IMG/VR virus record: IMGVR_UViG_3300034117_001582
Span: 227,868-291,867 of that record
Strand: one strand, 5' to 3'
DNA: 64,000 bases
A program made the position numbers and the translations under genes. Below are positions 4,755 to 52,938 of this stretch, piece after piece. Numbering within the stretch: position 1 is the stretch's first letter; every line of letters begins with the position of its first letter. The notes beneath the pieces were generated by a model. The model did not search any database, had not been told where the DNA came from, and saw only the letters and a program-made list of their open reading frames with translations.

Positions 4755-4770
4755 ATAAGATAAATATAAG

Positions 4771-4804
4771 GAAACAAAAAACCCCACTGATGAGGTGGGG
4801 AATT
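4771..4804 (-). terminator. Cassette terminator
   Basis: ccccac tgatgag gtgggg + T-tract. Confidence 0.8.
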
Positions 4805-4826
4805 ATTTTACATATTATAAGGATTA

Positions 4827-8236: not shown

Positions 8237-9358
8237 TTATGCGTAGTTAACGTCTCTTGTTGTATCTATTTTTGCAAACTCCTGAGAGTAATCGTATATC
8301 TTATTTAAATCCACCTCTATATATGAATCATACTCATCTTTTACTGTTTTTGTTGCGGTATTAAAAAGTGTTTTAACGTCATGTGCGTCAGTATCATTAA
8401 TAAACAATTTAAAATTTAATAACGTAATATCTTCTGTACTTTTGAATGGTATCTTCATTAAATTATTCTCGTAAACCACATTAAAAACATTATCACCACT
8501 TTTAATCTTAACATTATCTTTTATTAATTTAATAAAATTATCTAATGTTCCAAAATCATCTACCCCTAAAAGTCTTTTTAAATTTTGAACTCTTGATGAA
8601 TTTTCAGTAGCAGAGTTACCGTAATCGGTATTAGTATTAACGGAAATTTGGGGGCCTTTAGCGTCTTCTGGTAAATAATCCACACCCTTACTGATAAAAT
8701 ACCCGCTAAGGCAGTGATTAAACTCGTGTACTAAAATTAACATAATAGAGTTTTTATTAACGTCACTTGGAAATACATTTTTAACACAAAAATTCAACTT
8801 AGAATATTCACCTTTAATAACAAACCCACCTGTAGAATCGTCACATGTCAAACTAAAAACTAAATTTACACTATTTAAAAAGTTTTTTAATTCATTTTTT
8901 TGTTTGTTATCCCATGCCGTTATCACGCCTTTTAATTTTACCTCCTCTTCTTTTACCATATCATTAAAAAACTCAAGGGTTTCTTTTGCTCTTTGTAATT
9001 CAGAAATATTGGCATTTTTTAACCCATTAACTTTGTTTTGCCAATTAATTACTTGTTTTTTATATTTTTCTAAATCTTCTGTATTGTATTTAGAACCTTT
9101 TCCTATTTTTTCTTGAACTTTTTTATTGAACCACTCGCTATCTATGTATTTTAACATGTAAGTTTTTGCTTCTGTAAAAAATGGTTTAACAAAATTTTCA
9201 ACCTCTGTTATTTTTTCTTGTTCGGTTTTGGCTTTGTCTTCCCAATAGGCTCGAAGGGTATTTAAATTAATGTTTTTTAATTTACAAGCATCATCCACTT
9301 CCTCTTTAATTACACCCATTATTGATTGTATTCTTCTTATGTTTTCGTGTAAATTCAT
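8237..9358 (-). CDS. Leader-B protein, putative zincin metalloprotease (HEFNH), paralog of 11853..12920
   Basis: MNLHENIRRIQSIMGVIKEE; ILVHEFNHC plus downstream E; TATTTAT 9363-9369. Confidence 0.85.
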   Translation of the reverse strand: MNLHENIRRIQSIMGVIKEEVDDACKLKNINLNTLRAYWEDKAKTEQEKITEVENFVKPFFTEAKTYMLKYIDSEWFNKKVQEKIGKGSKYNTEDLEKYKKQVINWQNKVNGLKNANISELQRAKETLEFFNDMVKEEEVKLKGVITAWDNKQKNELKNFLNSVNLVFSLTCDDSTGGFVIKGEYSKLNFCVKNVFPSDVNKNSIMLILVHEFNHCLSGYFISKGVDYLPEDAKGPQISVNTNTDYGNSATENSSRVQNLKRLLGVDDFGTLDNFIKLIKDNVKIKSGDNVFNVVYENNLMKIPFKSTEDITLLNFKLFINDTDAHDVKTLFNTATKTVKDEYDSYIEVDLNKIYDYSQEFAKIDTTRDVNYA

Positions 9359-9375
9359 ATTAATAAATATATCAT

Positions 9376-9412
9376 AAATAAAAATCCCCCCATCTTTACA
9401 AGTGGAGGATTA
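9376..9412 (-). terminator. Intrinsic terminator
   Basis: aatcc..ggatt imperfect hairpin + T-tract; related sequence at 14705-14730. Confidence 0.6.
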
Positions 9413-9418
9413 GTCATT

Positions 9419-10120
9419 TTATGGTACTTGTTGTAACCCTAACTCAAAGTAGTCATACTCGTTGTTGTAAAATCTTGGATTGTTTACAAATATATTATAC
9501 ATTGGAAGTAAAATGTTATGTAACTCTTCTTTCCATTCGTCGTAGTCAGTTTCTGTCATATCACTTATAAAATATTTAGGTTTTACTTTTTCTAATGTTC
9601 GTTCTAAATTGTCTTGAAGATTAGTTTTTCTTAGGTTTGTTATATTTCCATAAACATATACTTCTACTTCAGGGTCATTTGTTGTGACATGCGTGGTTTC
9701 ATAATCAAAGTCAAACTCATAACGATAAAACACCCCCGAAAAATCAATATGTTTAATTTGTTTTCCACTAACATTAAGATGTGTTCTATCTTCTTTTGAT
9801 ACATAACAATTGTTTCTGATATTTTTCATCCATGAAGCAAAATGCTTATATTTGTTAAAATCAGTGTTTGTCATATCACAAAATGATTTAAACTCATCAT
9901 GTAAAACTTGAGTTAGTATTGTTTTTGAATATGAATAATCATTTGGGTTTTTAACTTTCCATTTTATTTGTAACCCTGTCCATTTTGGAACTAAAAAAAG
10001 TCCTTCGAATTCTATTGGGTTTTCATTTAAATAATTATAATAGTAATACTTTACAGGATTTTCTTTAGGGTTGGTTCTTTCTTCCCTTAATACTCTTCTT
10101 ATGTTCTCTTGTAGGTTCAT
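9419..10120 (-). CDS. Leader-B protein (MNLQENIRRVLREE), unknown cargo
   Basis: Start reassigned to 10120 (4-nt overlap with upstream stop). Confidence 0.85.
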   Translation of the reverse strand: MNLQENIRRVLREERTNPKENPVKYYYYNYLNENPIEFEGLFLVPKWTGLQIKWKVKNPNDYSYSKTILTQVLHDEFKSFCDMTNTDFNKYKHFASWMKNIRNNCYVSKEDRTHLNVSGKQIKHIDFSGVFYRYEFDFDYETTHVTTNDPEVEVYVYGNITNLRKTNLQDNLERTLEKVKPKYFISDMTETDYDEWKEELHNILLPMYNIFVNNPRFYNNEYDYFELGLQQVP

Positions 10121-10848
10121 TCTGATAAATCTATAAACCAAGCAGATATTGGCACGTTTAGTTGGTTGGCGATGGTTGATCGTTTGTGTCCACCAATTAA
10201 TGTATATTCATTTCCTTCTCTTCCGCCTGTTGGTAATTTCATTACAAATGGTGCTGGAAGTTCTCTATGTTTTTCATTTCTTATTTTTTCTATATTATCA
10301 ACATAACCTTTGTGACGTTGTTTAACTTCTCCATCATCGCCTGTCATTTGTTTAATTAAACCTGATGATGTGGTATCTTTAAACATTCCTGGAAACTCTT
10401 TTGAGAATCTACCCATATAAAATGTGTTATTTATCATATCATTATCCCATTCTTCCATTCTTCCTTTATTAAACAAATTAAACCCTTCCATTTGTGATTG
10501 TCCATCTTTTAATAAAACTTGTCTAAAATCCTCCCAATCATCCATTAAATCAGATATTTCTTTATCTAATAGAATGTCTTTAATTTCTTGTTCATCATCC
10601 ACTTCACTTCCTTTTGAATGTTCGGCAATCATTTTGAATGTATGAGGAAATATGGAATACATTAAATCATAATTTTGTGGGTGAAAGAATTCATCTTTAC
10701 TGAACCTCATATTATTTCCCAATAGTTCATCTAACTCTTGGTTAAAGTATTCTACTGTTGGTTCTAACCAAGTGATAGAATATGGATTTGATATCTCATT
10801 TAACCCCATCATTGATTTAATTCTTTGTATGTTTTCTTGTAGGTTCAT
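10117..10848 (-). CDS. Leader-B protein with C-terminal ParB/Sulfiredoxin-like domain
   Basis: PAPFVM...YTLIGGHKRSTIANQLNVPI resembles ParBc P.V...Y.IIDGHHR..A...LG. Confidence 0.7.
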   Translation of the reverse strand: MNLQENIQRIKSMMGLNEISNPYSITWLEPTVEYFNQELDELLGNNMRFSKDEFFHPQNYDLMYSIFPHTFKMIAEHSKGSEVDDEQEIKDILLDKEISDLMDDWEDFRQVLLKDGQSQMEGFNLFNKGRMEEWDNDMINNTFYMGRFSKEFPGMFKDTTSSGLIKQMTGDDGEVKQRHKGYVDNIEKIRNEKHRELPAPFVMKLPTGGREGNEYTLIGGHKRSTIANQLNVPISAWFIDLSE

Positions 10849-10861
10849 ATTAATGAATATA

Positions 10862-11071
10862 TTATTTTTTGATAATTCTTATTCTTTTTTTTTCAATCCA
10901 ATTTTTTAATTCTTGAGTTTCTGGTACTTCAGTTAAAACAAACTCCCTAATATAATCATCGGCTAAAAAATTTGGTAAATTAACGGGTTGAAATCCCATT
11001 TCGTTTTTTGTGATTAAGACCAAATGATTTTTTTTTCTTTTGTGTCTTTTGGTGGGTATTAGTTTTTTCAT
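10862..11071 (-). CDS. Small basic hypothetical protein
   Basis: 69-aa ORF in operon order. Confidence 0.6.
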   Translation of the reverse strand: MKKLIPTKRHKRKKNHLVLITKNEMGFQPVNLPNFLADDYIREFVLTEVPETQELKNWIEKKRIRIIKK

Positions 11072-11111
11072 TTATGTTTTATTATTCTTTTTATATAACC
11101 TTGTAGGTTCA

Positions 11112-11429
11112 TTACTTTGTCTTCTTAACACAATTAGGATATCGTTTACCAAACATTGTCTTCATACCTTTTTGAGTATATCCTGCCCAACATCTCTCTG
11201 TAAGTTCACCTTCTTTCATCTCACTTTGTTTACGTTTACCTTGACAGTGAGCTCTTTGACTAAATCCTTTTGGGTTATTGCAGTCGATTGATTTTTTATA
11301 CTTTTCTGACCACTTTTCTGTAACATCCCCTTCTCCCATCTCTTCGTCATTTTTTATTGTATTTTCATTGATTACTCTTTTAACTAACAAAATAAGGTCT
11401 GATTCCGTTAACCGTATTACTTTTTTCAT
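11112..11429 (-). CDS. Leader-A protein carrying two short basic Cys-pair modules
   Basis: VTE|KWSEKYKKSIDCNNPKGFSQRAHC and LTE|RCWAGYTQKGMKTMFGKRYPNCVKK, modules I recall from large T4-like phage proteins. Confidence 0.85.
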   Translation of the reverse strand: MKKVIRLTESDLILLVKRVINENTIKNDEEMGEGDVTEKWSEKYKKSIDCNNPKGFSQRAHCQGKRKQSEMKEGELTERCWAGYTQKGMKTMFGKRYPNCVKKTK

Positions 11430-11430
11430 A

Positions 11431-11838
11431 TTATCTATTGTATGGCCTAAACCTTGATGGGTTTGATTTTATTGCTGACTTTGGGAATTTTAATCCAACA
11501 CCCTGTTGTCTTGCGTTCTTTAATGTTCTTGCGTATTCGGTTAGTTCTTCATTTCCCATATCATCAATAGCCTTTACTAATTTATGGCATTTCTCTGATA
11601 CCTCACCCTTTTCGTGATCAGTTATTGATAATTTTACTTTGTTGTAATTTATTTTAATATCAGGATGATGATTTTGTGATTCGGCAATCTTCGCAACTTT
11701 ATTAACAAATTCCATTGATTCATTAAAATCTTTGAATTTAAAAGTTCTTTCTAATTTTTGCTCTGAATCACTCCAACCTTTGGATTCATTCATATTTATC
11801 ATTTCCTGTATTCTTCTTATGTTCTCTTGTAGGTTCAT
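11431..11838 (-). CDS. phhB: Leader-B + pterin-4-alpha-carbinolamine dehydratase (PCD/DCoH) + basic C-terminal peptide
   Basis: LERTFKFKDF..SMEFVNKVAKIAESQNHHPDIKINYNKVKLSITDH is the Pterin_4a signature. Confidence 0.85.
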   Translation of the reverse strand: MNLQENIRRIQEMINMNESKGWSDSEQKLERTFKFKDFNESMEFVNKVAKIAESQNHHPDIKINYNKVKLSITDHEKGEVSEKCHKLVKAIDDMGNEELTEYARTLKNARQQGVGLKFPKSAIKSNPSRFRPYNR

Positions 11839-11852
11839 ATTATATGAATATA

Positions 11853-12920
11853 TTATGCGTAGTTAACATCATTATTTGTATTTATTTTTGCAAATTGTAT
11901 TGAGTAGTCATATATTTCTTTTAAATTGATTTTTAGTAAAGAAAGATTTAAATCTATCATATAATCTCCTACTGATATGGCATCTGATGCCGTCATTTCA
12001 TATTTTTTTCTATAAAAATCATATTTGTTTACCATTTCAGGATCTTCAGTGTATTCATTAAATAACCACCAAACGTCAATAGCGTCTACATTGTTAATAT
12101 TAATCCTAACGTCTATCCATTTCAATCGTTTATCGGATTTTTTATTGTTTTTACCATATATTTTTATTAAATTACCATCATATTCCACTTTATCAATAAC
12201 TACCTTATCGTCTTGCCCTGAAAACTTAACGTTATCTTTTATTAATTTAATAAAATTATCTAATGTTCCAAAATCGGTTACATTTAAAAGTCTTTTAAGT
12301 GTTTTAATACGAGCCGAATGTTCGTTATTTGATTTACCATAATCCTTATCCCATTCTTTAGGATAACGTTCCCCATACCATTTTGAATCAATATTGGATG
12401 GTAAATAGTTAGATACACCAATATTTTTAAAATAAAAAGAAATACAATGGTCAAATTCATGGACTAAAATTAATATACCCTCATTTTTATTAACACCATT
12501 AGGAAATATATTTTTAGTACAAAAATTAAGATTAGAATATTTGTCTTCATTAACAAACCCACCTACTTTGGGTTGACAGATTGGATCATCCGAATTAAAA
12601 ACTAAATTTACATTATTTATAAAGTCTTTTAATTCTTTTTTTTGTTTATCACCCCAATCTCCATTTGTGAACTCAATAAGTTTTTTATTGAACCATTCAC
12701 TGTCTACGTATTTTAACATGTAAGTTCTTGCTTGAGTAAAAAATGGTTTAACAAAATTTTCAACCTCTGTTATTTTTTCTTGTTCGGTTTTAGATTTGTC
12801 TTCCCAATATTTTTTTAAAGTAATAGGGTCAACATGTTTTAATTTACAAGCATCATCCACTTCCTCTTTAATTACCCCCATCATTTCCTGTATTCTTCTT
12901 ATGTTCTCTTGTAGGTTCAT
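11853..12920 (-). CDS. Leader-B protein, putative zincin metalloprotease (HEFDH)
   Basis: Paralog of 8237..9358; both end AKI.T..DVNYA; TATTTAT 12925-12931. Confidence 0.85.
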   Translation of the reverse strand: MNLQENIRRIQEMMGVIKEEVDDACKLKHVDPITLKKYWEDKSKTEQEKITEVENFVKPFFTQARTYMLKYVDSEWFNKKLIEFTNGDWGDKQKKELKDFINNVNLVFNSDDPICQPKVGGFVNEDKYSNLNFCTKNIFPNGVNKNEGILILVHEFDHCISFYFKNIGVSNYLPSNIDSKWYGERYPKEWDKDYGKSNNEHSARIKTLKRLLNVTDFGTLDNFIKLIKDNVKFSGQDDKVVIDKVEYDGNLIKIYGKNNKKSDKRLKWIDVRININNVDAIDVWWLFNEYTEDPEMVNKYDFYRKKYEMTASDAISVGDYMIDLNLSLLKINLKEIYDYSIQFAKINTNNDVNYA

Positions 12921-12935
12921 AATGATAAATACTTT

Positions 12936-13649
12936 TTACATATGAATTATTTTCCACTTACCTTTAAAATCCTCCACAAGACATGTGGAGTTCTCACAGA
13001 AGTCCCCACTGTTCATATAGTCCACATCTAACTTAGGTTGATGGATGTGTCCACATACCGCGACATCACATCCTTTTTGTTTTGATAATCCTTTTGCGTT
13101 CTCCTCAAAATCAGATACAAAGTTGATTGCTCCCTTTACAGATTGTTTAATATCATTTGCCAAGGAATGGTATGGTAAGTTAAACTTTCTTCTAATATAG
13201 TTGTATATCGTATTTAATCTAATAACTAAATCGTATGACCATCCACCAAGAACTGCCAACCATCTTACTTTCATAATCACAAAGTCTAATACATCCCCAT
13301 GAAAACAATAATAACTTCTTCCGTCCGCTCCAATGTGTGTGTATTTTCTAACAATCTCTATGTTGTTTAATAAGAACGGAACAAATGGTTTTAAAAAGTC
13401 ATCGTGGTTTCCCCTGATATACACTACCTTTGTTCCATCTTCTGATCGTTTCATAAAACGTCTGAATATCTTTGAGCAATCTTTTTTCCATTTACCTCCA
13501 CCCTTTAATGCCCATCCATCAATAATATCACCATTTAATATTAGTGTTTCAGATTCATTCTCTTCCAAGAACTTAATTATCTTGTCTGTTTGTGATTGTC
13601 TGGCACCTAAGTGTAAATCACTCATTATAATTGTTCTCCACTTTTTCAT
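12936..13649 (-). CDS. LpxH/PlcP-like metallophosphoesterase (UDP-2,3-diacylglucosamine hydrolase family)
   Basis: SDLHLG, LNGDIIDGW, GNHD, HGD, RWLAVLG..SY, CGHIH, YMNSGDFCENSTCLVE. Confidence 0.88.
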   Translation of the reverse strand: MKKWRTIIMSDLHLGARQSQTDKIIKFLEENESETLILNGDIIDGWALKGGGKWKKDCSKIFRRFMKRSEDGTKVVYIRGNHDDFLKPFVPFLLNNIEIVRKYTHIGADGRSYYCFHGDVLDFVIMKVRWLAVLGGWSYDLVIRLNTIYNYIRRKFNLPYHSLANDIKQSVKGAINFVSDFEENAKGLSKQKGCDVAVCGHIHQPKLDVDYMNSGDFCENSTCLVEDFKGKWKIIHM

Positions 13650-13972
13650 ATAAATAAAGATATGTATTGTGCTAATTTATAACCTGTAAATGCCCCAATG
13701 GCGGCAGATCCAGGAAGAATAATAAATTTACCCAATTTTGTTTTATACTTTTCACGATTTACAATGTATGAGATTAATAAATAATATAATATAAAATTTA
13801 TAAATACCATAAAATCAAGCTCCTTTGACATAAAAACAACAATTGAGTTACCAATAAGTCCCCACATAAAATTTATAATGGTTTCTCTTATTAACTCAAA
13901 TGGTGTTGTAATGGCCCCAAATATATTAATTTGTTTGCTCATGGGATTTTGTTTATTTTTTTTCATTTCCAA
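13646..13972 (-). CDS. Small multi-pass membrane protein
   Basis: Three hydrophobic segments; overlaps both neighbours. Confidence 0.7.
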   Translation of the reverse strand: MEMKKNKQNPMSKQINIFGAITTPFELIRETIINFMWGLIGNSIVVFMSKELDFMVFINFILYYLLISYIVNREKYKTKLGKFIILPGSAAIGAFTGYKLAQYISLFI

Positions 13973-14685
13973 TAGTCTTTGTCGTTTGTAAAATATTCTT
14001 TATTTTTATTATTGAAGAATGATGACAACATTAGTCTTAACATATACATCACACCTTTGTTTTCAAATCTTCTTGGTGGTGTATATACAATATTGTTTAT
14101 TCTTCCGAATTTCTTTGGTTTAATTTGTTTTGAGAACATATAATCTTCTGCGACTTTAATCTCTTCATCAAAACCTCCAATTGATTTAAACGTCTCTGAA
14201 CGAACTAACATGTATCCACCTAAACAGAATGGTGTTGACCACTTGGAAAGTGCTTGTATTAAGTCAAACACCTTATATACGTAGTTATATCTTCCATTGT
14301 CTGAACGGAACTTTGTTGTTACTAAATCTAAATGGTATCTATGTATTCTTACTACCGATCGTTTTAGTACCTTTGGATCTAATAGGAACACATCAGCATC
14401 CATAAACAACACATATGGTGTTGTAACAAGTTTGAATCCGTTGTTTCTTGCTATTGCTGGAAGTCCACCATCCATTAAATGTAAATCAAACATATCTGAA
14501 TTATGTTCATATTCTATTCTACCCAACAGGGCAAATTTTGTTACACCATCGTTTGATGCGTCACATACAACAACTTTTACGTTATGTATATCAACCTGAT
14601 AGTTTAACAGGTCCAACGTTTTTAATATAATATCCTTCTCGTTCTTACAAGGTATTACGATCGTTACTAATTTACTTAAATCCAT
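13963..14685 (-). CDS. Glycosyltransferase family 2
   Basis: TIVIPCKNE, VVVCDAS.DG, ARNNG, VLFMDAD (DxD), GGFDEEIKVAED. Confidence 0.92.
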   Translation of the reverse strand: MDLSKLVTIVIPCKNEKDIILKTLDLLNYQVDIHNVKVVVCDASNDGVTKFALLGRIEYEHNSDMFDLHLMDGGLPAIARNNGFKLVTTPYVLFMDADVFLLDPKVLKRSVVRIHRYHLDLVTTKFRSDNGRYNYVYKVFDLIQALSKWSTPFCLGGYMLVRSETFKSIGGFDEEIKVAEDYMFSKQIKPKKFGRINNIVYTPPRRFENKGVMYMLRLMLSSFFNNKNKEYFTNDKDYWK

Positions 14686-14763
14686 ATTCGTTTAATATAA
14701 TAATAATCCACCATATTTACAAGTGGAGAATAAAATTTATATTCAGCAATATCCAAATTTAAT

Positions 14764-15273
14764 TTATTTTTGACACCCAGGACTTTTGGGGTTCATTTTT
14801 TTACAATGGGTTCCTGTATAATAATCCCAACCTTTTTCAGAGTGACCAATTGATGTTTTTTCAAAAATATTTGGTTCAAAAAAAGTATTTAATTTATTAA
14901 TAATTTCATTATATACTTTTATAACTTCGCCATCCCATTTTTTATTTTTTTCAGCATCAAATTTTACACTTTCCATACTTGATTTAAAATAACCAACTAA
15001 ACCAACTAATTTAGGAACGTCATCAATAGTTTCACCTTCTTTTAAATTTTCATATTTTTCTTTATCGTAGTATTTACCATCAACTTTAACATAAAAATTT
15101 AACATACGTTCCACATTGTCTTTTAACTCTAAAATTGCGCTTATATGTGTTTTTTCATTATTATCACTTTTTAAGTTTAATTTATTTTTTATATATTCTA
15201 AACTGTTAGTGTTTTCCTCAGATAAGGTTATCATCATTGATTTAATCCTTTGTATGTTTTCTTGTAGGTTCAT
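14764..15273 (-). CDS. Leader-B protein, unknown cargo
   Basis: MNLQENIQRIKSMMITLSEE; first 45 nt incl. flank near-identical to gene 10117..10848. Confidence 0.85.
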   Translation of the reverse strand: MNLQENIQRIKSMMITLSEENTNSLEYIKNKLNLKSDNNEKTHISAILELKDNVERMLNFYVKVDGKYYDKEKYENLKEGETIDDVPKLVGLVGYFKSSMESVKFDAEKNKKWDGEVIKVYNEIINKLNTFFEPNIFEKTSIGHSEKGWDYYTGTHCKKMNPKSPGCQK

Positions 15274-15322
15274 ATTATATAATTATCTTTGTGTTCATTA
15301 ATGTTATATTTCATATCACTTA

Positions 15323-16393
15323 TTAATCCCAATCACCATTTTTTATTGTTTCCATCATCCAAGAAATGATTGATAATAACTCTTCATTAGTTAGGTTGTT
15401 AATAGTTGTTATGTATTGGTCGTTTTGTTCAGTATGTCCGTATTCATCAATATCAAATTCCATTATCTCAACAGCAATTTGGTCGCTGTCTTGAACCATT
15501 ATATCGTCAACATATTTGTTATTACTTAATTGTATTTCATATCCACTAAGTATTCCACTATTATCTCCCCATTTATTACCATTTATTAAAACAAAATCCC
15601 TAATATATTGTTTTAATACTTCTTTAGGGTTATTCATGTTTTTTAACGCCGAACTAATTTGACGAATGTCTAACCCTGACATGTTTATAAAATCATATAA
15701 ACCATACTCATCTATAAGTTCCGTTAAAGATTGTTTTTTATTTTCTGATTCATTCATGGGTTTCCATTTGCAATTTGGTTTTGATATGGATCCAACATAT
15801 AAATTATCTATTGGCAAATAACCTTTAATAGCGTTTTTAACATCATTTCTTAAATTTTCTCCATGTCGCGCTCTTCCAACAAAACTAAAAAATAAATCAT
15901 TTAGTTCTTCCGACCCAAACACCAAATAAATCACATACATATCGTCTTCGAATGTTACTCTAATATCGCAAACACAATCTTCTTTTTTGAATGGTTCTAT
16001 AAGTTCTTTAATTATGTTAAGATACTTTGGTTGTTTTTCTTCGGATTCATTTATAACGTTTCCTTCACTATCGTATTTTAGTTTAATGGCATCCAAACGA
16101 AAATCTGCACTGTTATCTTGGTCATTGTGCCAATATGGAATAAGTTTAATACCTGTATATTCATAGATTTTACGTTGTATTTGTTCTGCAAAATAAGTCT
16201 CTTCATTACCAGCATATTCATCGTTATCAAAATAAACTCTTATCATTGGTTTATTTTCATATTTTTTAATATCAATAAAACTAACCTCATCAAAAAACTC
16301 ATGAATCATTCTTGTCACCAACTTAAGTTTTTTCTCTTCAGATTTGTCAACTGATTCCCTTAATATTTTTTTTATGGATTCTTGTAGGGTCAT
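15323..16393 (-). CDS. Leader-B three-module polyprotein-like protein
   Basis: ILRE|S, VINE|S, PMNE|S partition three modules. Confidence 0.85.
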   Translation of the reverse strand: MTLQESIKKILRESVDKSEEKKLKLVTRMIHEFFDEVSFIDIKKYENKPMIRVYFDNDEYAGNEETYFAEQIQRKIYEYTGIKLIPYWHNDQDNSADFRLDAIKLKYDSEGNVINESEEKQPKYLNIIKELIEPFKKEDCVCDIRVTFEDDMYVIYLVFGSEELNDLFFSFVGRARHGENLRNDVKNAIKGYLPIDNLYVGSISKPNCKWKPMNESENKKQSLTELIDEYGLYDFINMSGLDIRQISSALKNMNNPKEVLKQYIRDFVLINGNKWGDNSGILSGYEIQLSNNKYVDDIMVQDSDQIAVEIMEFDIDEYGHTEQNDQYITTINNLTNEELLSIISWMMETIKNGDWD

Positions 16394-16845
16394 ATAAAAA
16401 TTATATTAGTGGCTTTACAACCAAACTTTTCATTTATTAACTCTAATAACTCAATTTTCCAATTACCTTTACGTCCCAAGTAGTTCTCAATTTCTTCAGC
16501 AAACTGTTCGTAAAATATTATAAAATTAAAATTTGGATTTTTAACATCAGGCATTTCATAACATACTTCAGGTAACTCACCCATTACTTCTTTAAAGTAT
16601 TTACCATTATCGTCATAGTTATTACCATCAACCAATTTGAATAAATAATCATCATAATTATTTTTTGGAAGAACAAACCCAACAGCATATGGGTCACAAC
16701 AAACACCCATTCCACAATTATATTGAGCCCAATCATAATAGATATCATCAAATCCATCAAACAACATATTAAGTAAATTGCTTAAAACGGGTTTAATATT
16801 GGTTTCTTCCCTTAATATTTTTCTTATGGATTCTTGTTGGTTCAT
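16390..16845 (-). CDS. Leader-B protein (MNQQESIRKILREE)
   Basis: ORF track; Cys-rich cargo. Confidence 0.85.
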   Translation of the reverse strand: MNQQESIRKILREETNIKPVLSNLLNMLFDGFDDIYYDWAQYNCGMGVCCDPYAVGFVLPKNNYDDYLFKLVDGNNYDDNGKYFKEVMGELPEVCYEMPDVKNPNFNFIIFYEQFAEEIENYLGRKGNWKIELLELINEKFGCKATNIIFI

Positions 16846-18441
16846 CTATATATTATTTTTAACCATATTATAAAAGAACTCACTGATTTTATCAGGAGTT
16901 GTTATGTTCTGTTGTTTTAATTGTGACCGATAAAACCCTACCATCGCAATTATTTGTGACATAGGCGCGTTTTTATATAATGATGGAGGAATAAACCCTT
17001 TATCTAATAATCCTTGTTTTTGGAGTTGTTTAATCTTTTTTCCCGCAAACTCATCCGCAACTTCTTCAGTATGTTTCATTAGGTTTGCTGCCTCCTCAAC
17101 ACTTATATCACCAAGATAACACTCATACATTAAATCTTCACCATATTTTTTAAATTGGTACTGATGTGCAGTCTCGTGAAATATAATAAACAATAGATAT
17201 TCTAACCTTTGGTTTAACGCCATTTTATTTATTAACACACCATCATGTAAAGCAACTCCCATAGCCGGCATCTTGAAATTGGCAAATTCTATTTTTTTGC
17301 AGTTTGATTGTGAAATAAAATCTTTTACCTTTTCTATTAACTCATCAGACATTTCATGTCTTGATGTAATATCATCTATTAAGGTGTTAACACCATCAGT
17401 TTCTTCCTTTAATACTTTTCTTATGGATTCTTTTAGGTATATGTTTTTCTTTCCACAATCGTTAACTGTTTTGTAATACGTATCAACCGCCTCGTTTGTG
17501 TAATTATAAATTACCTGCCAAATCTCATCCAATATGTTATCATACATTTGTTTAATCCCTTGAGTTTGTGGAAAAAGTTTTGTTCCATGTCCACCAATAA
17601 ATGTTACGGTAACACTTACAAATTTAAATGTATTATTACCCAAAGTATTTCTTTCATTAGGTACCTTAACTTCAAACCCACATATTACGTGGTCATATTC
17701 AGGTAGTATTATATTATTTAATACATTCTCAATCATTTCTTTTTGTGACTCTTCTTTGGATTCTCTTATCATATCTCTGCCAGTACCTTCACGCATTAAT
17801 TCTATTGCTTCTGATGGTATGTTATCAAACGTAACTATATGTTTCTTAGATGATTCAAAATGTCTATCTTTATACCACTTAACATTAGGTATTAATTCTG
17901 TATTGATTGTCCATACATCGTCGTCATATGTAGAATCAAACCACGCTCGTTTATTTGTCGAGTTGGTTGCAAATATTGCAGGTATACATTTTTCACCATA
18001 TCCTGCGTATATTTTATAACATTCACCAGCAATTGCCTTTAACCCTTCATTTGATATTCTATCTCTAAACTTTGGATTGGATTTATGTATAACAATTTTG
18101 TTTGGTGTAATTTCTTTTCCTGCTGGGCTATAATTTTCATTAAGTTCTTCCTCATATCTTTCAGTATCTAAATAAAAATCAGGTTCCTTTTTTAATTCTG
18201 TTCGTTTCTTGTAGTCATACCAAGGAACAACATTTAAACCGGTAAACTTATTTATAGTATCACATATTTCTGAACTCTCTAACTCTTCCCATGCATCATA
18301 GTAAACCATAATCTCATTTCTTTTGGCGATGTATTCTAAATCTATAATATTATCAAACATGGTATATATAAAATTCTTAACTAACTCAAATTTATTAGTC
18401 TCCTCTTTTAATACTTTTTTTATGTTCTTTTTTATGTTCAT
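16846..18441 (-). CDS. Four-module polyprotein-like protein: unknown + ART/Tpt1-like + unknown + IrrE/ImmA-like HExxH peptidase
   Basis: VLKE|, ELNE|, MIRE|, embedded YLKESIRKVLKEE; HETAH...EEVADEFA. Confidence 0.8.
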   Translation of the reverse strand: MNIKKNIKKVLKEETNKFELVKNFIYTMFDNIIDLEYIAKRNEIMVYYDAWEELESSEICDTINKFTGLNVVPWYDYKKRTELKKEPDFYLDTERYEEELNENYSPAGKEITPNKIVIHKSNPKFRDRISNEGLKAIAGECYKIYAGYGEKCIPAIFATNSTNKRAWFDSTYDDDVWTINTELIPNVKWYKDRHFESSKKHIVTFDNIPSEAIELMREGTGRDMIRESKEESQKEMIENVLNNIILPEYDHVICGFEVKVPNERNTLGNNTFKFVSVTVTFIGGHGTKLFPQTQGIKQMYDNILDEIWQVIYNYTNEAVDTYYKTVNDCGKKNIYLKESIRKVLKEETDGVNTLIDDITSRHEMSDELIEKVKDFISQSNCKKIEFANFKMPAMGVALHDGVLINKMALNQRLEYLLFIIFHETAHQYQFKKYGEDLMYECYLGDISVEEAANLMKHTEEVADEFAGKKIKQLQKQGLLDKGFIPPSLYKNAPMSQIIAMVGFYRSQLKQQNITTPDKISEFFYNMVKNNI

Positions 18442-18442
18442 G

Positions 18443-18766
18443 TTACATTACTTGGGATAAAAACTTTTTAATTGTTCTAACCACTTTTTGTCTATATGGA
18501 TTGTTTTCATTTGAAAAATTATCAATTGGTTCTGTAACGTTATTATCTTCTAACATATTCAATATCAATCTTACTTGTCTTTTTTTATTATCAAAAGTTC
18601 CAATATTATAATAATCGTCATCTACTTTGAAATAAACTTTTTTAAATCTAATCTGGTCATCAATATTTATTTCTTCAACTTTATATCTTCGCATAAGAAA
18701 ATTCATAACTTTTTTGTCAATGTCCTCAGTTTCTTCTTTCAATATGTGTCTAATTAGTTTTCTCAT
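18443..18766 (-). CDS. Leader-C protein (MRKLIRHILKEE)
   Basis: ORF track. Confidence 0.85.
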   Translation of the reverse strand: MRKLIRHILKEETEDIDKKVMNFLMRRYKVEEINIDDQIRFKKVYFKVDDDYYNIGTFDNKKRQVRLILNMLEDNNVTEPIDNFSNENNPYRQKVVRTIKKFLSQVM

Positions 18767-19209
18767 TAAATAAAAATATAATCATCAACTTTTAATCCTT
18801 TATATCCTGTCACAGATCCATACGTATAACTCTCTTCTAATTTTAATTCGTCAGGTATATATTCATACATCTCAAACACATATTCACCTAATTTTTGAGA
18901 CTCTATATAGGGGTCAAATTTACCTTCATAATCAAATGGAGTAAGGACATATGCTATTTGTTTGTTTTTAATATATTCAAGGTTATACATCCGTTTTTTT
19001 TCCAAACCATAAAATTCTTTTACCTTTTCATATTCAACAACTAAATCAATATAAATACTTGTCCTATATTCCTCATAGTCGTTATGTAATTGCCAACCAA
19101 CAACAAATGGAAACTCGTTCTTTAATCCGTTAACAACAATATCAATACCCTTATCTATTTGTTGTTTAGATACCTCTTCATTTAATATGTGTTTAATAAG
19201 TCCTCTCAT
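18766..19209 (-). CDS. Leader-C protein (MRGLIKHILNEE)
   Basis: ORF track. Confidence 0.85.
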   Translation of the reverse strand: MRGLIKHILNEEVSKQQIDKGIDIVVNGLKNEFPFVVGWQLHNDYEEYRTSIYIDLVVEYEKVKEFYGLEKKRMYNLEYIKNKQIAYVLTPFDYEGKFDPYIESQKLGEYVFEMYEYIPDELKLEESYTYGSVTGYKGLKVDDYIFI

Positions 19210-19211
19210 TA

Positions 19212-20273
19212 TTATGCTTTTAACGTTTCTACTATATCCTGAATGTCAGACAAATCATAACTACGACTTATGTTGTTTGGTCGTTGTGCAGTCTTTCCGT
19301 TTATTTCCCCCAACTGAACATAGGTTTGAGGCATCCTATGTTCATTACTATCCAATTTAACAACTTTTACTGAAGACTCATCATTAAAAGAATCATATAA
19401 AAAATCTTTAAATTTATGATTCTCATCTTCCGTTAATTTATTTTCATTATAAATAATATTAACTATTGGCCAACTATTAGACATCCACCTATTCCATCCG
19501 GCATCGATAGTTTTAAATGGTAAAACAATTGATGGTTCGTCCCCATCCGTTGTCCAAGATACCTCAACCAAACCTTTTTGGTTTTCAATTCTTTCAACCA
19601 TTTCGGGGTCGTCTTTGAATATTTTTTTTAAATTGTCTAATCCTCCAACCAATTTTGCAGCATAAAATAATCCATCCGTTTTTATTAGATTAATAATGTC
19701 CGAATTATTACTTTCATTTAAACTTTCAGATTCGCCATAAAGTTTGTCGTGTATTCTCTCTACATCTTCTATTGAAAAAGAGTCATCATAATCATGTATA
19801 TCGACATCATTACCGTTTATTTGTGTAACATCAAAATAAGTGGACTTCCCAAAATCAAATGATTTAGTTTTTAACTTTCCTACAGTGTTGTCATTTTGAA
19901 TTACCGAAATAATGGTTATCAGTTTGTTTTTTTCCACCGAAGTTAATTTACTGTCATCATAAATAAGATTTAATTCAGGCCAAGAATGTGTGCCCCATAT
20001 ATTTTTTCCAATACCTATTATTTCATATTTAATTGGAAATACAACAAATTTATCACTTTTAAATTTCCCATCGTAATACATTTCAAAATCAACAACACCT
20101 GTTAATTCATCTAATATTTCAGAAACTTCGAGGTCATCTTTGAATATACTTTTAAGATTATCCAGTCCACCAACCATTTCAGCAGCATCAAAGATATTAT
20201 TATCTTCGATAAATTGTTTCAGCTCTTGTTGGAGTCTATTTTCTTTTAATATGTGTTTAATAAGTTCTCTCAT
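19212..20273 (-). CDS. Leader-C protein with two homologous modules
   Basis: AAEMVGGLDNLKSIFKDD / AAKLVGGLDNLKKIFKDD; HSWPELNLIYD / NSWPIVNIIYN; linker SLNE|S. Confidence 0.88.
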   Translation of the reverse strand: MRELIKHILKENRLQQELKQFIEDNNIFDAAEMVGGLDNLKSIFKDDLEVSEILDELTGVVDFEMYYDGKFKSDKFVVFPIKYEIIGIGKNIWGTHSWPELNLIYDDSKLTSVEKNKLITIISVIQNDNTVGKLKTKSFDFGKSTYFDVTQINGNDVDIHDYDDSFSIEDVERIHDKLYGESESLNESNNSDIINLIKTDGLFYAAKLVGGLDNLKKIFKDDPEMVERIENQKGLVEVSWTTDGDEPSIVLPFKTIDAGWNRWMSNSWPIVNIIYNENKLTEDENHKFKDFLYDSFNDESSVKVVKLDSNEHRMPQTYVQLGEINGKTAQRPNNISRSYDLSDIQDIVETLKA

Positions 20274-20275
20274 TA

Positions 20276-20932
20276 CTATCTACTTCCTCTTACTCTATCT
20301 ATTTCGACCTCACGAAGTTTATCTACATATAATTTATCAATATAACCAGGAGTTTCTTTTTCTTTTTTAATTAAATCGTTTGCTTTCCATAAAGTATTTT
20401 TGACAATAAAATCAATCATTTCATCATTTGTAACTCCTTCAGGTTTTGAAACAGGAGGAACGCAAATTTGAGTTTTTTCTGGATGTACAGAAAATTCATC
20501 TATTGTTATATCATTTCTTCCCATTTTATTTTGGATTGTTTCTAAAAATGTGTCTTCAAACCAGTCTTGAATAACATATTTTAAATAGTTTTTTCTTACG
20601 GGAATGTCTGAATTTAATTCATCAAATATATCTTTAGGCATTTGTAATTCACCACTTTCAAAATCTCTTTCTTCCGTTTTTCTTTTATCATCAAAAACAT
20701 TTTCATCATCATGGAAGAATAATATAACACTCATTATTTCTTTTCCGTCGTTACACCATTCAAAATCATGTCTTGTTTCCCAAGATTTGTCATGATACAT
20801 TTGTGCGCCATCAACATAGTCGTTTAACCACCTATAGATAAGTTTATCCACACTTGGTGTTGGCTTTGAGTATTTCTTATTAACCTCTTCTTTTAATATA
20901 TGTCTAATTAAATTTCTATTCTCCATCATCAT
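20276..20932 (-). CDS. Leader-C protein (..RNLIRHILKEE)
   Basis: Start among the MMM codons at 20932-20926. Confidence 0.8.
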   Translation of the reverse strand: MMMENRNLIRHILKEEVNKKYSKPTPSVDKLIYRWLNDYVDGAQMYHDKSWETRHDFEWCNDGKEIMSVILFFHDDENVFDDKRKTEERDFESGELQMPKDIFDELNSDIPVRKNYLKYVIQDWFEDTFLETIQNKMGRNDITIDEFSVHPEKTQICVPPVSKPEGVTNDEMIDFIVKNTLWKANDLIKKEKETPGYIDKLYVDKLREVEIDRVRGSR

Positions 20933-21347
20933 ATTCTTCTTGTACAAATTGGTATTTCATATTCATTGAATAGTCACCTCCCGCACTCCATTCACAACCA
21001 ATAAACCAAAACATCAAGTTATTATGTTTACCTTTCTTTTCCCCAAAAGACCCATTACTTGTAAATGAATAATTAAGTAAAATTTTATTCAATTCTTTAT
21101 CGACTGTTTTTAGTTGGTCGGTAAACGAAAAAAGGTCAGGGTCTTCACACCAAGATGTTATTAATAATTCACCCTCAATTTCGTTACTTCTGCTAATATA
21201 ATTAATATTCGCAGTTTCTATATTTGTTATTAAACTTGAATCTACATTACTTTGTAATATCCACGCAATTTTTTGAGCAGATCTAATAAACTTTTCTTTA
21301 AGATCTGAAGTATCTTCTTTTAATACTTTTCTAATTATTTCTTTCAT
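20916..21347 (-). CDS. Leader-C protein (MKEIIRKVLKED)
   Basis: ORF track. Confidence 0.85.
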   Translation of the reverse strand: MKEIIRKVLKEDTSDLKEKFIRSAQKIAWILQSNVDSSLITNIETANINYISRSNEIEGELLITSWCEDPDLFSFTDQLKTVDKELNKILLNYSFTSNGSFGEKKGKHNNLMFWFIGCEWSAGGDYSMNMKYQFVQEEYDDGE

Positions 21348-21988
21348 TTTACTGGCTTACCGTATTTGTAGAATTTCTGTTGTATGTTTATTGTGCCCTT
21401 ACATCCACCTGTCTTCTTAGTCCCATTATCATTAAAACATTTAGGTATGGTTTTATTAAAATAATAAACCATTTTAGGCTCCCCTGAATTGCCTGAGTGC
21501 ATGGATTGTAATTGTCCATTAACCGCAGACTCACCTCCACCAGCACTTCCTCTACTATCGAATTGCTCGTAAGTATATCCATCAGTACTAGGACCAATAG
21601 TAACTTCCCAATTTACCGTTAAAGTATTTGGGTCAATAAACACATACATGTCTTTAATATCAACGGCCTTAACATTTTTATTTTTAAATTTATAATCTTT
21701 AATACCATTTTGTACTATCGTATTAATTCTACCACCAAACCCATCGGACCGTCTTCTGTGAAATGAATGTAATGCGTCGTAAACTCCTGATTTACCAGCA
21801 GCACTATAACTTCCTTTTATTACTTCATCTGATGAAAATCCTTTTGATGGGTCTAACCATAGTGAACCTTTAAGGTCTTTAGTCGGGTCAGGTTTAATAT
21901 TAGCCCCTTTTTTCTTTTCGTTATCCTCTAATATATTAGGATTTAAACCAACATATTCTTTTAATACTTTTCTAATTAAATCTTTCAT
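21344..21988 (-). CDS. Leader-C protein (MKDLIRKVLKEY), Gly-rich cargo
   Basis: First gene of a long operon; TATTTAT 21993-21999. Confidence 0.85.
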   Translation of the reverse strand: MKDLIRKVLKEYVGLNPNILEDNEKKKGANIKPDPTKDLKGSLWLDPSKGFSSDEVIKGSYSAAGKSGVYDALHSFHRRRSDGFGGRINTIVQNGIKDYKFKNKNVKAVDIKDMYVFIDPNTLTVNWEVTIGPSTDGYTYEQFDSRGSAGGGESAVNGQLQSMHSGNSGEPKMVYYFNKTIPKCFNDNGTKKTGGCKGTINIQQKFYKYGKPVK

Positions 21989-24854: not shown

Positions 24855-26213
24855 TTAACCATAAAAGTAAGTTTTTAACGTCTTTCTAACGTTTTCGTTA
24901 ACTTTTATTATTAATTCTTGATTTTTACTTTTTTTAAACTTTAAATCATTACCATCCCATATTGTATTTACCATTTTACCATTTACCAACGCATTTACCT
25001 TATCAAACTTATCTAACGTTAAACGAACGCTTGTTATTTTTTTATTAAATTTTGATTTTAAATATAAAATAAAGACATTAACGGTTCCTGTTTTAACGTC
25101 ATATTTAATCTTATGTTCTTTTTCTTTATCAATTTCAAAACTAGGCACGGTACCATCTAAAAGTGATTGGAAAATGTCATCCTCATTTGATAATAAGTCA
25201 TTTGGGTTAGTCATCGAAACATTATTAATTTTACTAAATAAATTTCCCCATGTAGTTCCGTTTAATATGCCGTCCTTGATTGTTAATGCCTCACCACTAC
25301 CAATACTAACCTTATACCCATTAAGTGTTTTTTTAAGTGATAAATAATAACCTGACCCATCAGGTATTTTTTTTGTTTTGCCATCATTTTCTAATGGTTC
25401 TCCATAAAAAATATATTCACCATCACCTAAAACACCCAAAGAAACGTTTTCATCTAACACAAAATTACTATATGAATCAACAACCCCTGTTGGTGTTGTA
25501 TTATTATTATTTAGTGTTGGTTTTGGTATTACCTCATCATTTGGCGTATCACTTTGCCCAAACTTTAAATCTTTACCATCCCATATTACGGTAACATCTT
25601 CCTGATTTATGGTGGCAGTTATACCATCGGACGAATTTAATTCTAACCGAACATATGGTATTTTTTTATCACATTTTGATTTTAATATTAACGTAACAAT
25701 AATAACGGTTCCGGTTTTAGGGTCAAACACAATGTTATTTGACACATCTTCTTTATCAATTTCAAAACAAGAAACGGTATTATTTAAAAGTGATTGGATG
25801 ATGTTATTTGCATCCGATGATAAACCATTTGGAGTATTAAATGAAACTTTATTAAATTTATAAAATAAATCTTTCCATGTGTTATCAATTAATTTACCAT
25901 CTTCGATTGTTAAATATGCATTATGGTCAATATTAACGTTAACCCCATTAATTGTTTTTTCAAGGGTTAAATAATATTTTGACCCGTCAGGTATATTTTT
26001 AGTTGTGTTATAATCTTTAAAAACACTTTCGACATTAAAAAAGTCATAAACACCACCATCTAAAATACCCAAAGAACTATTTTTATCTAATGTTATATAC
26101 TTACCACTTGAATTAGCAACCCCCGTTGGTGTTGTAGGATCAACATCTTCATTCAATATTCGTCTAACAATTCTTTTTAAATCGGATTCAGTAAGTCTTA
26201 TTACTTTTTTCAT
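24855..26213 (-). CDS. Leader-A protein with tandem duplicated ~190-aa domain
   Basis: TTPTGV...IPDGS.YYL...SLL..TV..FEIDKE...KTGTV...IWDG.DLKF twice. Confidence 0.9.
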   Translation of the reverse strand: MKKVIRLTESDLKRIVRRILNEDVDPTTPTGVANSSGKYITLDKNSSLGILDGGVYDFFNVESVFKDYNTTKNIPDGSKYYLTLEKTINGVNVNIDHNAYLTIEDGKLIDNTWKDLFYKFNKVSFNTPNGLSSDANNIIQSLLNNTVSCFEIDKEDVSNNIVFDPKTGTVIIVTLILKSKCDKKIPYVRLELNSSDGITATINQEDVTVIWDGKDLKFGQSDTPNDEVIPKPTLNNNNTTPTGVVDSYSNFVLDENVSLGVLGDGEYIFYGEPLENDGKTKKIPDGSGYYLSLKKTLNGYKVSIGSGEALTIKDGILNGTTWGNLFSKINNVSMTNPNDLLSNEDDIFQSLLDGTVPSFEIDKEKEHKIKYDVKTGTVNVFILYLKSKFNKKITSVRLTLDKFDKVNALVNGKMVNTIWDGNDLKFKKSKNQELIIKVNENVRKTLKTYFYG

Positions 26214-26252: not shown

Positions 26253-26579
26253 TTAAACTAATAACGTAACCATTTCTTTAATGCTTTGTTCTGAAACGAC
26301 ACCAACACTTGTATTCGTTACTTCAGACCCATTAAACGATTTGATTGCAGGAATACTTCTAATACCAATAGACGTTACGTAATCCTTATTTTTATCTATG
26401 TCCATAGTATACATTTGGATTTCAGTTTGATTGTTTTTGGCCACTTTTTCAAATATTGGCATCATCATCTTACAGGGTCCGCACCATAATCCATGAAATT
26501 CAACAATAATTTTTTCACCATTGTTTAATTTTTCTTTTAATTCTTTTGCGGTAATTTCTAAATTATTATGTCCTTCCAT
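26253..26579 (-). CDS. trxA: Thioredoxin
   Basis: WCGPC active site; IRSIP cis-Pro motif. Confidence 0.93.
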   Translation of the reverse strand: MEGHNNLEITAKELKEKLNNGEKIIVEFHGLWCGPCKMMMPIFEKVAKNNQTEIQMYTMDIDKNKDYVTSIGIRSIPAIKSFNGSEVTNTSVGVVSEQSIKEMVTLLV

Positions 26580-27268
26580 CTTCTATTATTTTTTATACTA
26601 TATAAATATTGTTTATTAAATTTTGGGTATTTTTTATTTACATCGCTAATAGATGCGCCTTCTTTAAATTCTTTTTTTATTTCCTTAATAATTTCAACAC
26701 CATATTTTGATTGTTTTCTAATATTTTGTGTTGTTTTATTTATTCTTTTTTCTTTTTCTTCTTCGGACATATTGTCCCAACCATTTTTAACTGATAGTTT
26801 TCGTCTTTCTTTTTCTTCATTAGCCTTATCCCCATATAAGTCCTCATACGTTTTACCTTTATGTGATCTACCATCTTTTAATTTTTTAGAAATCTTTTCT
26901 CTAATTTCTTTAGAGTGTCTATACCCTAAACATCCTTCACCTCCGTGTGTTGAGTTTAAACCTTCTTTATATGTGTCAAGGTCATTTATGTGGTGTTTTT
27001 CTCTTTCGTATATGTTTGATGCATTACACTCTTCTAATAACTCTATTTGAAAGTTTTCAACCCCATACTTTCTTATAGAATTACAAAATTTTGTATTTAT
27101 GTCTGTTTTTAAACATCTCCAAGCGTGTTCTTCAAATCTTTTTTTTAATGATGTTATTGTGCAACCAACATATTGTTTACCGTTAATAATGTTTTTAATT
27201 ATATATATGTAACCTTTTTCTAACATTATGGTGTTTATATATAAATATCACCATACAGCTCAAATTTC
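26553..27268 (-). mobile_element. Free-standing homing endonuclease insertion flanked by GAAATT direct repeats
   Basis: Left ATG GAAATT TGA (27271-27260); right TTA GAAATT ACC in trxA. Confidence 0.65.
26558..27226 (-). CDS. GIY-YIG homing endonuclease with NUMOD3-like motif
   Basis: GYIYIIKNIINGKQYVGCT..RF..H; GYRHSKEIREKISKKLK. Confidence 0.92.
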   Translation of the reverse strand: MLEKGYIYIIKNIINGKQYVGCTITSLKKRFEEHAWRCLKTDINTKFCNSIRKYGVENFQIELLEECNASNIYEREKHHINDLDTYKEGLNSTHGGEGCLGYRHSKEIREKISKKLKDGRSHKGKTYEDLYGDKANEEKERRKLSVKNGWDNMSEEEKEKRINKTTQNIRKQSKYGVEIIKEIKKEFKEGASISDVNKKYPKFNKQYLYSIKNNRRWKDIII

Positions 27269-52936: not shown

Positions 52937-52938
52937 AT

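Follow-up and report, generated by a model that had tools for sequence, protein, structure and literature searches.

A predicted Tpt1-like ADP-ribosyltransferase-fold module in a leader-bearing cassette polyprotein of a T4-like jumbo phage

The window analysed here is a stretch of 64,000 nucleotides (GC content ~30%) that makes up the last 64 kb, positions 227,868 to 291,867, of the IMG/VR virus record IMGVR_UViG_3300034117_001582, itself 291,867 bp long and judged 99% complete. Its minus strand carries a 531-residue open reading frame (ORF), residues 103-227 of which are confirmed by structure modelling and fold searches as an autonomous domain of ~120 residues with the ADP-ribosyltransferase (ART) fold, closest to the NAD+-binding C-terminal lobe (C-lobe) of Tpt1/KptA. 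The family to which this module belongs is carried mainly by T4-like jumbo phages and is without a Pfam, NCBIfam or PHROG name. On balance it is probable that the module is a NAD+-using domain directed at a host target, and that it resides in a cassette polyprotein that is cut by a gp21-type prohead protease, packaged and injected.

Fold, family and putative NAD+ site

A first-pass annotation, made by eye, had placed a Tpt1/KptA-like module at window positions 17761-18135. The residues it quoted are all recovered on the minus strand (KIVIHKSNPKFRDRISNEGL, PAIFATNS, DDDVWTINT, KWYKD and KHIVTFDNIPSEAIEL), where the translation of this segment is stop-free and yields the 125 residues aa 103-227 of an uninterrupted ORF; the plus strand has many stops here, and the strand must be named. 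Within the ORF, the motif VIHKS occupies aa 117-121, PAIFATNS aa 154-161, STYDDDVW aa 170-177, KWYKD aa 188-192 and KHIVTF aa 200-205. The module is preceded by ...EELNE (aa 98-102) and ends with ...MIRE (aa 224-227), and the boundaries that had been drawn at these two points coincide with the breakpoints at which relatives reshuffle the module. The ORF is organized as follows:

16846..18441, minus strand: intact 531-aa ORF, a four-module cassette polyprotein (N1, ART-like, M and HExxH modules), from the ORF listing and BLAST mapping on 120 homologues
18400..18441, minus strand: N-terminal class A leader, aa 1-14, MNIKKNIKKVLKEE, variants of which open neighbouring genes
18136..18441, minus strand: module N1, aa 1-102, acidic, ending in ...EELNE, from segment mapping in relatives
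18136..18144, minus strand: entry junction L-N-E, aa 100-102, just before Asn103, a putative prohead-protease site from junction statistics
17761..18135, minus strand: ART-fold module, aa 103-227, from the AlphaFold2 (AF2) model, fold searches, the conservation table, and hidden Markov model (HMM) and hhalign alignments
17761..17769, minus strand: exit junction I-R-E, aa 225-227, followed by Ser228, a putative prohead-protease site from junction statistics
17440..17760, minus strand: module M, aa 228-334, small alpha/beta, recurring in relatives, from segment mapping
17401..17445, minus strand: internal leader copy, aa 333-347, NIYLKESIRKVLKEE, with L-K-E/S, marking the fusion point ahead of the C module; many relatives keep the same internal leader
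16849..17439, minus strand: C-terminal (C) module, aa 335-531, with HETAH at aa 422-426 (nt 17164..17178), from the HExxH motif, a weak Proabylysin match and ESM Atlas neighbours

The final AF2 run used a 70-sequence alignment spanning 34-89% identity to the module. All five models reached 89-92 in the predicted local distance difference test (pLDDT), the best with a pLDDT of 91.9 and a predicted template modelling (pTM) score of 0.84. A first model, built from 20 sequences at 72-89% identity, had a pLDDT of 58.9 and was discarded for the 70-sequence run. In a Foldseek search of the PDB with the final model, the top 17 matches are Tpt1/KptA RNA 2′-phosphotransferase entries (best E 2.8e-5, probability 1.0), followed by PltA, typhoid toxin, TreX, PARP14/15, pertussis toxin, RES and scabin. 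The best VIA-align superposition is with Tpt1 residues ~80-182 (Z 10.3, root-mean-square deviation (rmsd) 2.4 Å over 92 residues), and other ARTs score Z 7.5 or lower (DUF952/CC0527 7.5, bacterial toxins ~7). An exhaustive VIA search of 48,161 PDB representative chains returned just two chains at Z>=8, both of them Tpt1, and the top 50 are almost all ARTs. The best 30 matches in AFDB Swiss-Prot are all KptA, aligned over the C-lobe only. The AFDB clusters also yield DUF4433 (DarT) and DUF952, while BFVD also yields uncharacterised phage proteins and putative viral Tpt1s; the ESM Atlas structural neighbours comprise unnamed viral clusters, a GNAT-fused viral cluster and PF01885.

Searches at the level of sequence profiles lead, weakly, to the same enzymes. 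Against the PDB, the family profile gives Tpt1 as five of its seven best matches at sub-threshold values (E 0.15-0.9), and hhalign against a 24-sequence KptA alignment seeded by E. coli kptA reports 69.6% probability (E 4.2e-5) over 29 columns. The Pfam PARP model weakly overlaps the module in two divergent relatives, and a feature-based ESM Atlas search with the module alone remained below the recognition threshold with unnamed matches. Because the structure and sequence-profile searches agree on Tpt1, the segment does not come out as a non-ART fold. The first-pass call of a Tpt1/KptA-like ART fold is thus borne out by a confident model whose nearest structures are Tpt1/KptA, and each element picked by eye, from the beta1 His and the I..xGL helix to the hydrophobic beta2 strand and the terminal IP strand, has its Tpt1 counterpart in the alignments.

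The family is large. The whole ORF has 589 relatives among 5.8 billion clustered proteins, all of them unannotated metagenomic sequences of 311-930 aa. A profile search with the ART module through 1.84 billion representatives found 366 cluster representatives at E<=1e-3, which range from stand-alone proteins of 109-150 aa to a 2925-aa giant, and at least 84 viral contigs in IMG/VR carry the module, many of them with lengths of 200-373 kb. When the ORF, the module and relatives were scanned against Pfam, PHROGs and NCBIfam, no family passed the threshold, and the ORF had no blastn or tblastn match among 50,697 phage records. No annotated neighbours were found for a stand-alone relative (P0168) on its 2.5-kb contig. 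A sub-threshold similarity to Pfam DUF5820 was seen at module aa 148-201 (window ~17839-18000; best E 2e-4); this weak match recurs below the cut-off in 19 of 20 close copies and in only 5 of 70 diverse ones, and it is possible that DUF5820 is an ART-like family not yet recognised as such.

Mapping of the four segments N1 (1-102), ART (103-227), M (228-334) and C (335-531) by BLAST onto the best 120 homologues revealed the same segments in varied orders and combinations, breaking at identical residues. In these proteins the ART module is the best conserved of the four, with 74-98% identity versus 45-60% for M and ~54% for C. Many relatives carry it alone or straight after a 14-residue leader. 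Among 20 copies (72-89% identity) 59 columns are invariant, and the conserved residues include His119, Ser121, Arg126, Ile129, Gly133-Leu134, Phe157-Ala158, Asp173, Asp175, Trp189, Asp192, Thr204, Ile208-Pro209 and Gly219. The pairwise dN/dS ratio against 16 related viral loci is 0.08-0.25. The pattern of the ART module is far beyond chance. Module N1 usually, but not always, immediately precedes the ART module in relatives and may be a targeting domain or a long propeptide. Module M had no family match in the Pfam and PHROGs scans.

In distant relatives the module is partnered with ART-PolyVal plus LPD38 (the 2925-aa P0235), ART-PolyVal (a protein of 626 aa), HD, GNAT and DUF3990/PARP-like domains; the ART-PolyVal/LPD domains of P0235 and P0193 adjoin the module with no overlap. 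In the ORF itself, the partner at the C-terminal end is probably a zincin-type metallopeptidase. Its HExxH motif is invariant in 8 copies, and its nearest ESM Atlas cluster has SprT-like, Peptidase_M78 (ImmA/IrrE) and ArdC-type zincins as structural neighbours; its profile gave only weak matches in the PDB (Proabylysin at E 0.68, and a chance match to Erlin-2). A zincin-like partner therefore agrees with the IrrE/ImmA-like peptidase named in the first-pass annotation, an assignment that is plausible and draws on weak matches.

The NAD+ contacts described for TkoTpt1 (PMC12678800) were carried over to the module through the HMM and hhalign alignments, with conservation counted over the 70 sequences:

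His119, equivalent to His98 of TkoTpt1 and His105 of the E. coli enzyme: invariant (70/70)
Ser121, equivalent to Thr100 of TkoTpt1: contact to ribose hydroxyls in Tpt1; 58/70
Ile129, equivalent to Ile108 of TkoTpt1: adenine stacking in Tpt1; invariant
Gly133-Leu134, equivalent to Gly112-Leu113 of TkoTpt1: turn following helix 1; Gly 69/70, Leu 56/70
Phe157, equivalent to His122 of TkoTpt1: packs on the nicotinamide ribose in Tpt1; Phe 67/70, Tyr 3/70

In TkoTpt1, His98 contacts the adenosine ribose and the H98A mutant is inactive (PMC12678800). Since these contact positions are conserved, the adenosine/ribose half of the NAD+ site looks preserved. The family adds invariants of its own, namely Arg126, Asp175, which closes the acidic loop F-D-S-T-Y-D-D-D, and Asp192, so that an H, R, I, D, D set is invariant in 70 sequences of 34-89% identity.

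Leaders, junctions and the prohead protease

The polyprotein is one of ten leader-bearing genes packed on the minus strand at 14764..21988, as read from the ORF listing, with intergenic gaps of 0-50 nt; nine of the ten have no Pfam match. All ten open with variants of M-x-L-Q-E-S-I-R-R-I-L-R-E-E. Leaders of three classes are found at the N-termini of ~35 of the ~95 ORFs in the window:

Class A: MNLQE[NS]IRRI...
Class B: M..IRLTESDL.RIVRRV..E
Class C: MKIIITESQY..L.ES

The classes are otherwise different in sequence, and all contain a hydrophobic-x-Glu-[Ser/Asn] motif. Examples of minus-strand regions with leader ORFs are 85-351, 1383-5432, 8237-12920, 14764-21988, 24855-26213, 27601-30905, 39079-40232 and 45227-46471. 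Divergent relatives of the module bear class A or C leaders, and in a 373-kb genome a fourth class, MKHIKLFE..., is common to the module gene and its neighbours. A literal sequence search of the literature returned nothing for the leader peptides. At window 1383-4787 on the minus strand, ORFs of ~135-148 aa carry leaders in the order C, C, B, then B, B, C after a leaderless 99-aa ORF, an array that looks like another cassette cluster.

Leader remnants also flank the ART module inside the 531-aa ORF. At the entry junction of 134 close copies, whatever module lies upstream, Glu occupies P1 in 127 (background 9%), and 97 have Leu or Ile at P3. At the exit, a Glu lies within six residues of the GTGxx end in 107 of 122 copies, and in 89 of these it is followed by Ser. 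The gp21 family of proteases recognizes a short X-x-E motif and cleaves behind its Glu (PMC5694885). The genome encodes both a protease of this type (Peptidase_S77, 88.5 bits, a 236-aa ORF) and a gp23-type capsid protein (213 bits, 602 aa), and the latter reads ...H-L-I-N-E/A-A-S where the T4 maturation cut falls. The two genes belong to one block:

Genome ~150.9-155.5 kb: head-morphogenesis block with the gp23 homologue, a 415-aa acidic EMYEEDD-repeat ORF between gp23 and gp21, and a 149-aa ORF upstream of gp21

The 415-aa ORF, extremely acidic and rich in repeats, is probably a scaffold. The nearest cultured relatives of the gp23 homologue are distant T4-like phages of Flavobacterium, Microcystis and Rhodothermus, and a gp21-type protease is present in 11 of 12 near-complete module-bearing genomes. 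The T4 setting suggested from the sequence thus holds for a T4-like virus with gp21-type protease and gp23 capsid genes, and so does the idea of a modular polyprotein, whose ...LNE and ...IRE boundaries lie at reshuffled module edges.

Two precedents from T4 are pertinent. Alt is a head-packaged ART trimmed at both ends by gp21 (PMC9026906). The T4 internal proteins are diverse and share only a capsid targeting sequence, which delivers diverse proteins into the head (PMC3012670). By analogy, the polyprotein would be a set of fused internal-protein cassettes targeted to the prohead core. The prohead protease would cut after hydrophobic-x-Glu and before Ser or Asn, freeing the modules, and the free ART module of ~14 kDa would be injected with the DNA, bind NAD+ and act on a host target.

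Alternative explanations and significance

Several points weigh against this mechanism. The junction motif is short, with 15 [LIVMFW]-x-E sites in the ORF, some of them within folded domains, and the junction counts come from related, non-independent sequences. The association with gp21 may just reflect lineage. The ~35 leader ORFs are far above the ~eight core or internal proteins of T4, so the leaders may serve otherwise. As for the module, the third catalytic position opens the penultimate strand and is occupied by a His (His201) in 50 of 70 sequences, so it is neither invariant nor acidic; ARTs of the Tpt1 type are classed H-H-h and are also without the Glu. No Pfam ART model scores above threshold, and the sequence link to Tpt1 is local (29 columns) and moderately significant.

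The DNA of the leaders offers one such other use. Over the first 42 nt of the class A genes at 8237-21988, identity averages 52% and reaches 98%, versus 33% in the next 80 nt. Because unrelated genes share runs of ~30 identical nt, the leaders may also, or instead, serve recombination, and this similarity could be what drives the reshuffling of modules among relatives. In the strongest alternative, which is unlikely but carries real weight, the prohead protease plays no part. The polyprotein would either stay whole and work as a polyvalent protein, in the cytoplasm or after injection, or be cleaved by the HExxH peptidase that it carries, and the leaders would serve as cassettes for recombination or translation initiation. 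Zincin MPTase domains have been proposed to autoprocess polyvalent proteins (Iyer et al. 2017, PMC5512222), identity over ~30 nt suffices for recombination, ~35 leader genes in 64 kb would amount to much capsid cargo, and the x-E motif is frequent as well as short. However, the leaders stay in frame at internal fusions and are conserved as protein in many relatives, three unlike leader classes converge on hydrophobic-x-E-[S/N], and the same motif stands at the maturation position of gp23. Moreover, the HExxH module is missing from many architectures that have the same junctions.

A second alternative accepts the fold and denies the catalysis. The module would then be an inert ART-fold domain: a binder or inhibitor of a host NAD+-processing defence, a sponge for an ADP-ribose signal, or a structural head protein. 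The missing conserved Glu/Asp at the third catalytic position and the absence of the Tpt1 tetrad speak for it, as do the frequency of small binders among phage anti-defence proteins and one ESM Atlas structural neighbour, a viral cluster annotated Tad6. It is nevertheless doubtful, given that His119, Ser121, Ile129 and Phe157 together with four charged residues are invariant or nearly so at 34-89% identity, as is typical of an active site, and that polyvalent-type proteins join the module to other enzymes. Tad6 is a non-enzymatic binder of the Thoeris enzyme ThsB (PMC13728456). Identity of the module with Tad6 was rejected: hhalign between the two families gives 0.2% probability, and PF25188 has no match in this genome. 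Separately, members of the Tad6 family (Thoeris anti-defence) were observed in 5 of 18 related module-bearing phages (E 1e-13 to 1e-17), where their loci (L087-L090 in G008, G010, G011, G012 and G016) lie away from the module.

The first-pass annotation had also allowed for an RNA-repair enzyme, an option that is disfavoured. A genuine Tpt1/KptA RNA 2′-phosphotransferase or 5′-phosphate capping enzyme, working in RNA repair with the encoded ligase, would account for Tpt1 being the nearest structure and for the RNA ligase in the window, 24 kb off; Tpt1 enzymes also ADP-ribosylate 5′-phosphate ends (PMC6182162, PMC12678800). Yet all structural matches are limited to Tpt1 residues ~80-185, the NAD+-binding lobe, and the module has no counterpart of the N-terminal RNA-binding lobe (N-lobe). 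The Arg-His-Arg-Arg tetrad is accordingly lost: three of its residues belong to the N-lobe absent here, and the fourth position (Arg118 of TkoTpt1, Arg125 of E. coli KptA, five residues after G-L) is Gly in 54 and Ser in 14 of 70 sequences. PF01885 matched neither the ORF, the module nor anything in the whole genome at E<=1 and was detected in the control genomes. The conserved D-D-D loop is strongly acidic and ill suited to a phosphate substrate; a loop of this kind would make a poor partner for a phosphate nucleophile, which further disfavours RNA repair. Finally, the module is unlinked to the ligase gene. Being Tpt1-like in fold and not a Tpt1 enzyme, the module is very improbable as an RNA-repair factor.

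The ligase (phrog_968, E 1.4e-56) lies at window 41893-43011 on the minus strand. A few kilobases upstream of it on the coding strand, at higher window coordinates, ORFs at 46498-47151 and 47155-47547 (minus strand) resemble by eye a metallophosphoesterase and a P-loop kinase (GIPGSGKTT), respectively. Together with the ligase, these two ORFs may constitute RNA repair machinery of the T4 kind that is unlinked to the ART module.

That the resemblance is an artefact of modelling or chance and the segment lacks the ART fold, as the poor shallow-alignment model and the want of a curated family model above threshold might suggest, is hardly tenable in view of the five deep-alignment models at high pLDDT, the single answer from two independent aligners and five libraries, and the independent sequence-profile searches that rank Tpt1 first.

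The module is most likely a NAD+-using transferase, possibly a NAD+ hydrolase, acting on a host target, and not an RNA 2′-phosphotransferase. Delivery of ARTs by phage heads is already known, as are polyvalent proteins that combine an ART and a peptidase. What appears to be new is a widespread unnamed ART family that amounts to a free-standing Tpt1 NAD+-lobe with its own Arg/Asp signature, together with the leader-delimited, reshuffled cassettes of T4-like jumbo phages and the scale of the leader system. If the assignment is correct, it adds an unnamed and widespread family to the ADP-ribosyltransferase superfamily, and the NAD+-lobe of Tpt1 can stand alone as a 14-kDa viral module. The module would also be a compact candidate host-takeover or anti-defence enzyme of environmental jumbo phages.

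A broader picture may be sketched tentatively, as a possibility. T4-like jumbo phages, whose host is probably a member of the Bacteroidota, would run a combinatorial leader-cassette system in which dozens of unrelated effectors bear leaders cleavable by the prohead protease, the leader DNA provides microhomology for recombination, and the cassettes are continually fused, split and reshuffled, loaded into the capsid, separated into free effectors and injected. One of these cassettes would be a new minimal ART, the NAD+-lobe of Tpt1 stripped of its substrate lobe, whose active site is of the D-D-D/Arg/Asp kind and whose target specificity is new. Roughly one gene in three in this 64-kb arm has a leader, and such a system would explain a large share of unannotated jumbo-phage genes. 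A leader combined with hydrophobic-x-Glu would give a simple rule for predicting virion-delivered proteins in metagenomes.

Other genes of the window and known systems

A family 2 glycosyltransferase (PF00535, E 8e-14) at window 13963-14685, minus strand, adjoins the leader-gene cluster, and a thymidylate synthase homologue of 383 aa (phrog_160, E 4e-101) is encoded at 62573-63724, also on the minus strand. By eye, a thioredoxin-like ORF (WCGPC; 26253-26579, minus strand) overlaps the end of a GIY-YIG-like ORF (GYIYIIKN...YVG; 26558-27226, minus strand), which may be a homing endonuclease. Minus-strand ORFs at 48169-61683 have signal-peptide-like N-termini, likewise recognized by eye, that end in ..LFSQ, ..LQAQ or ..VFAQ. 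Ends of this kind are typical of secreted proteins and lipoproteins of Bacteroidota. Because of these signal-like sequences, the 30% GC content and the Flavobacterium-phage relatives of the capsid protein, a Bacteroidota host is hinted at.

Among known enzymes, Tpt1/KptA has the same ART-type fold (VIA Z ~10, rmsd 2.2-2.8 Å over ~90 residues), with an equivalent beta1 His, a Ser/Thr two residues on, the adenine-stacking Ile, a G-L-x-P turn, the beta2 strand and the terminal I-P strand. The module differs from it in lacking the winged-helix N-lobe, the tetrad and a PF01885 match, and in having an extra helix (aa 140-146), an N-terminal beta strand, the D-D-D loop and the invariant Arg126 and Asp192; it is also viral and embedded in a cassette polyprotein. 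DarT (DUF4433) and DUF952 are ART domains of like size with a similar H-x-[ST]...I-L..G-L start. Models of DUF4433 from the AFDB clusters reach template modelling scores of 0.62-0.63, and DUF952/CC0527 reaches VIA Z 7.5; solved DarT structures score lower (VIA Z 5.4-5.7). In contrast to these domains, the module has no DarG-like partner, matches neither Pfam model and has different conserved loops.

The polyvalent proteins (Iyer, Burroughs, Anand, de Souza and Aravind 2017) likewise mix ART, zincin peptidase and other effectors in variable order. They have been read as multi-effector proteins delivered early, in which ART is typically neighboured by GNAT (PMC5512222). Relatives of the module share with them the combination of multiple unrelated effector domains in variable architectures. 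However, the polyvalent-protein Pfam domains (ART-PolyVal PF18760, MPTase-PolyVal and the LPDs) have no match in this ORF, and the module is not an ART-PolyVal domain, a family with an H-Y-D signature. The proteins described here are also short, and their modules are split by conserved leader or cleavage-like junctions that are undescribed for polyvalent proteins.

The closest functional parallel is T4 Alt, an ART of a T4-type head that is cut after Glu and injected to modify host proteins (PMC9026906, PMC5512222), as is proposed for the module. Alt belongs to the R-S-E clade (Alt/VIP2) and is a single protein of ~76 kDa with no sequence relation to the module, whereas the module is of 14 kDa and the Tpt1-like clade and lies in a multi-cassette protein that would be packaged. 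The leader proteins in turn recall the T4 internal proteins IPI-III, which are diverse, fast-evolving small proteins that have only a short N-terminal leader in common, terminating at a protease site, and are encoded by clustered genes (PMC3012670). They differ from IPI-III, to which they have no homology, in their at least three leader classes, in their number (~35 ORFs in 64 kb) and in the internal leaders at fusions. This architecture suggests that the capsid-targeting principle of T4 has been scaled up into a shuffling library of injected effectors.

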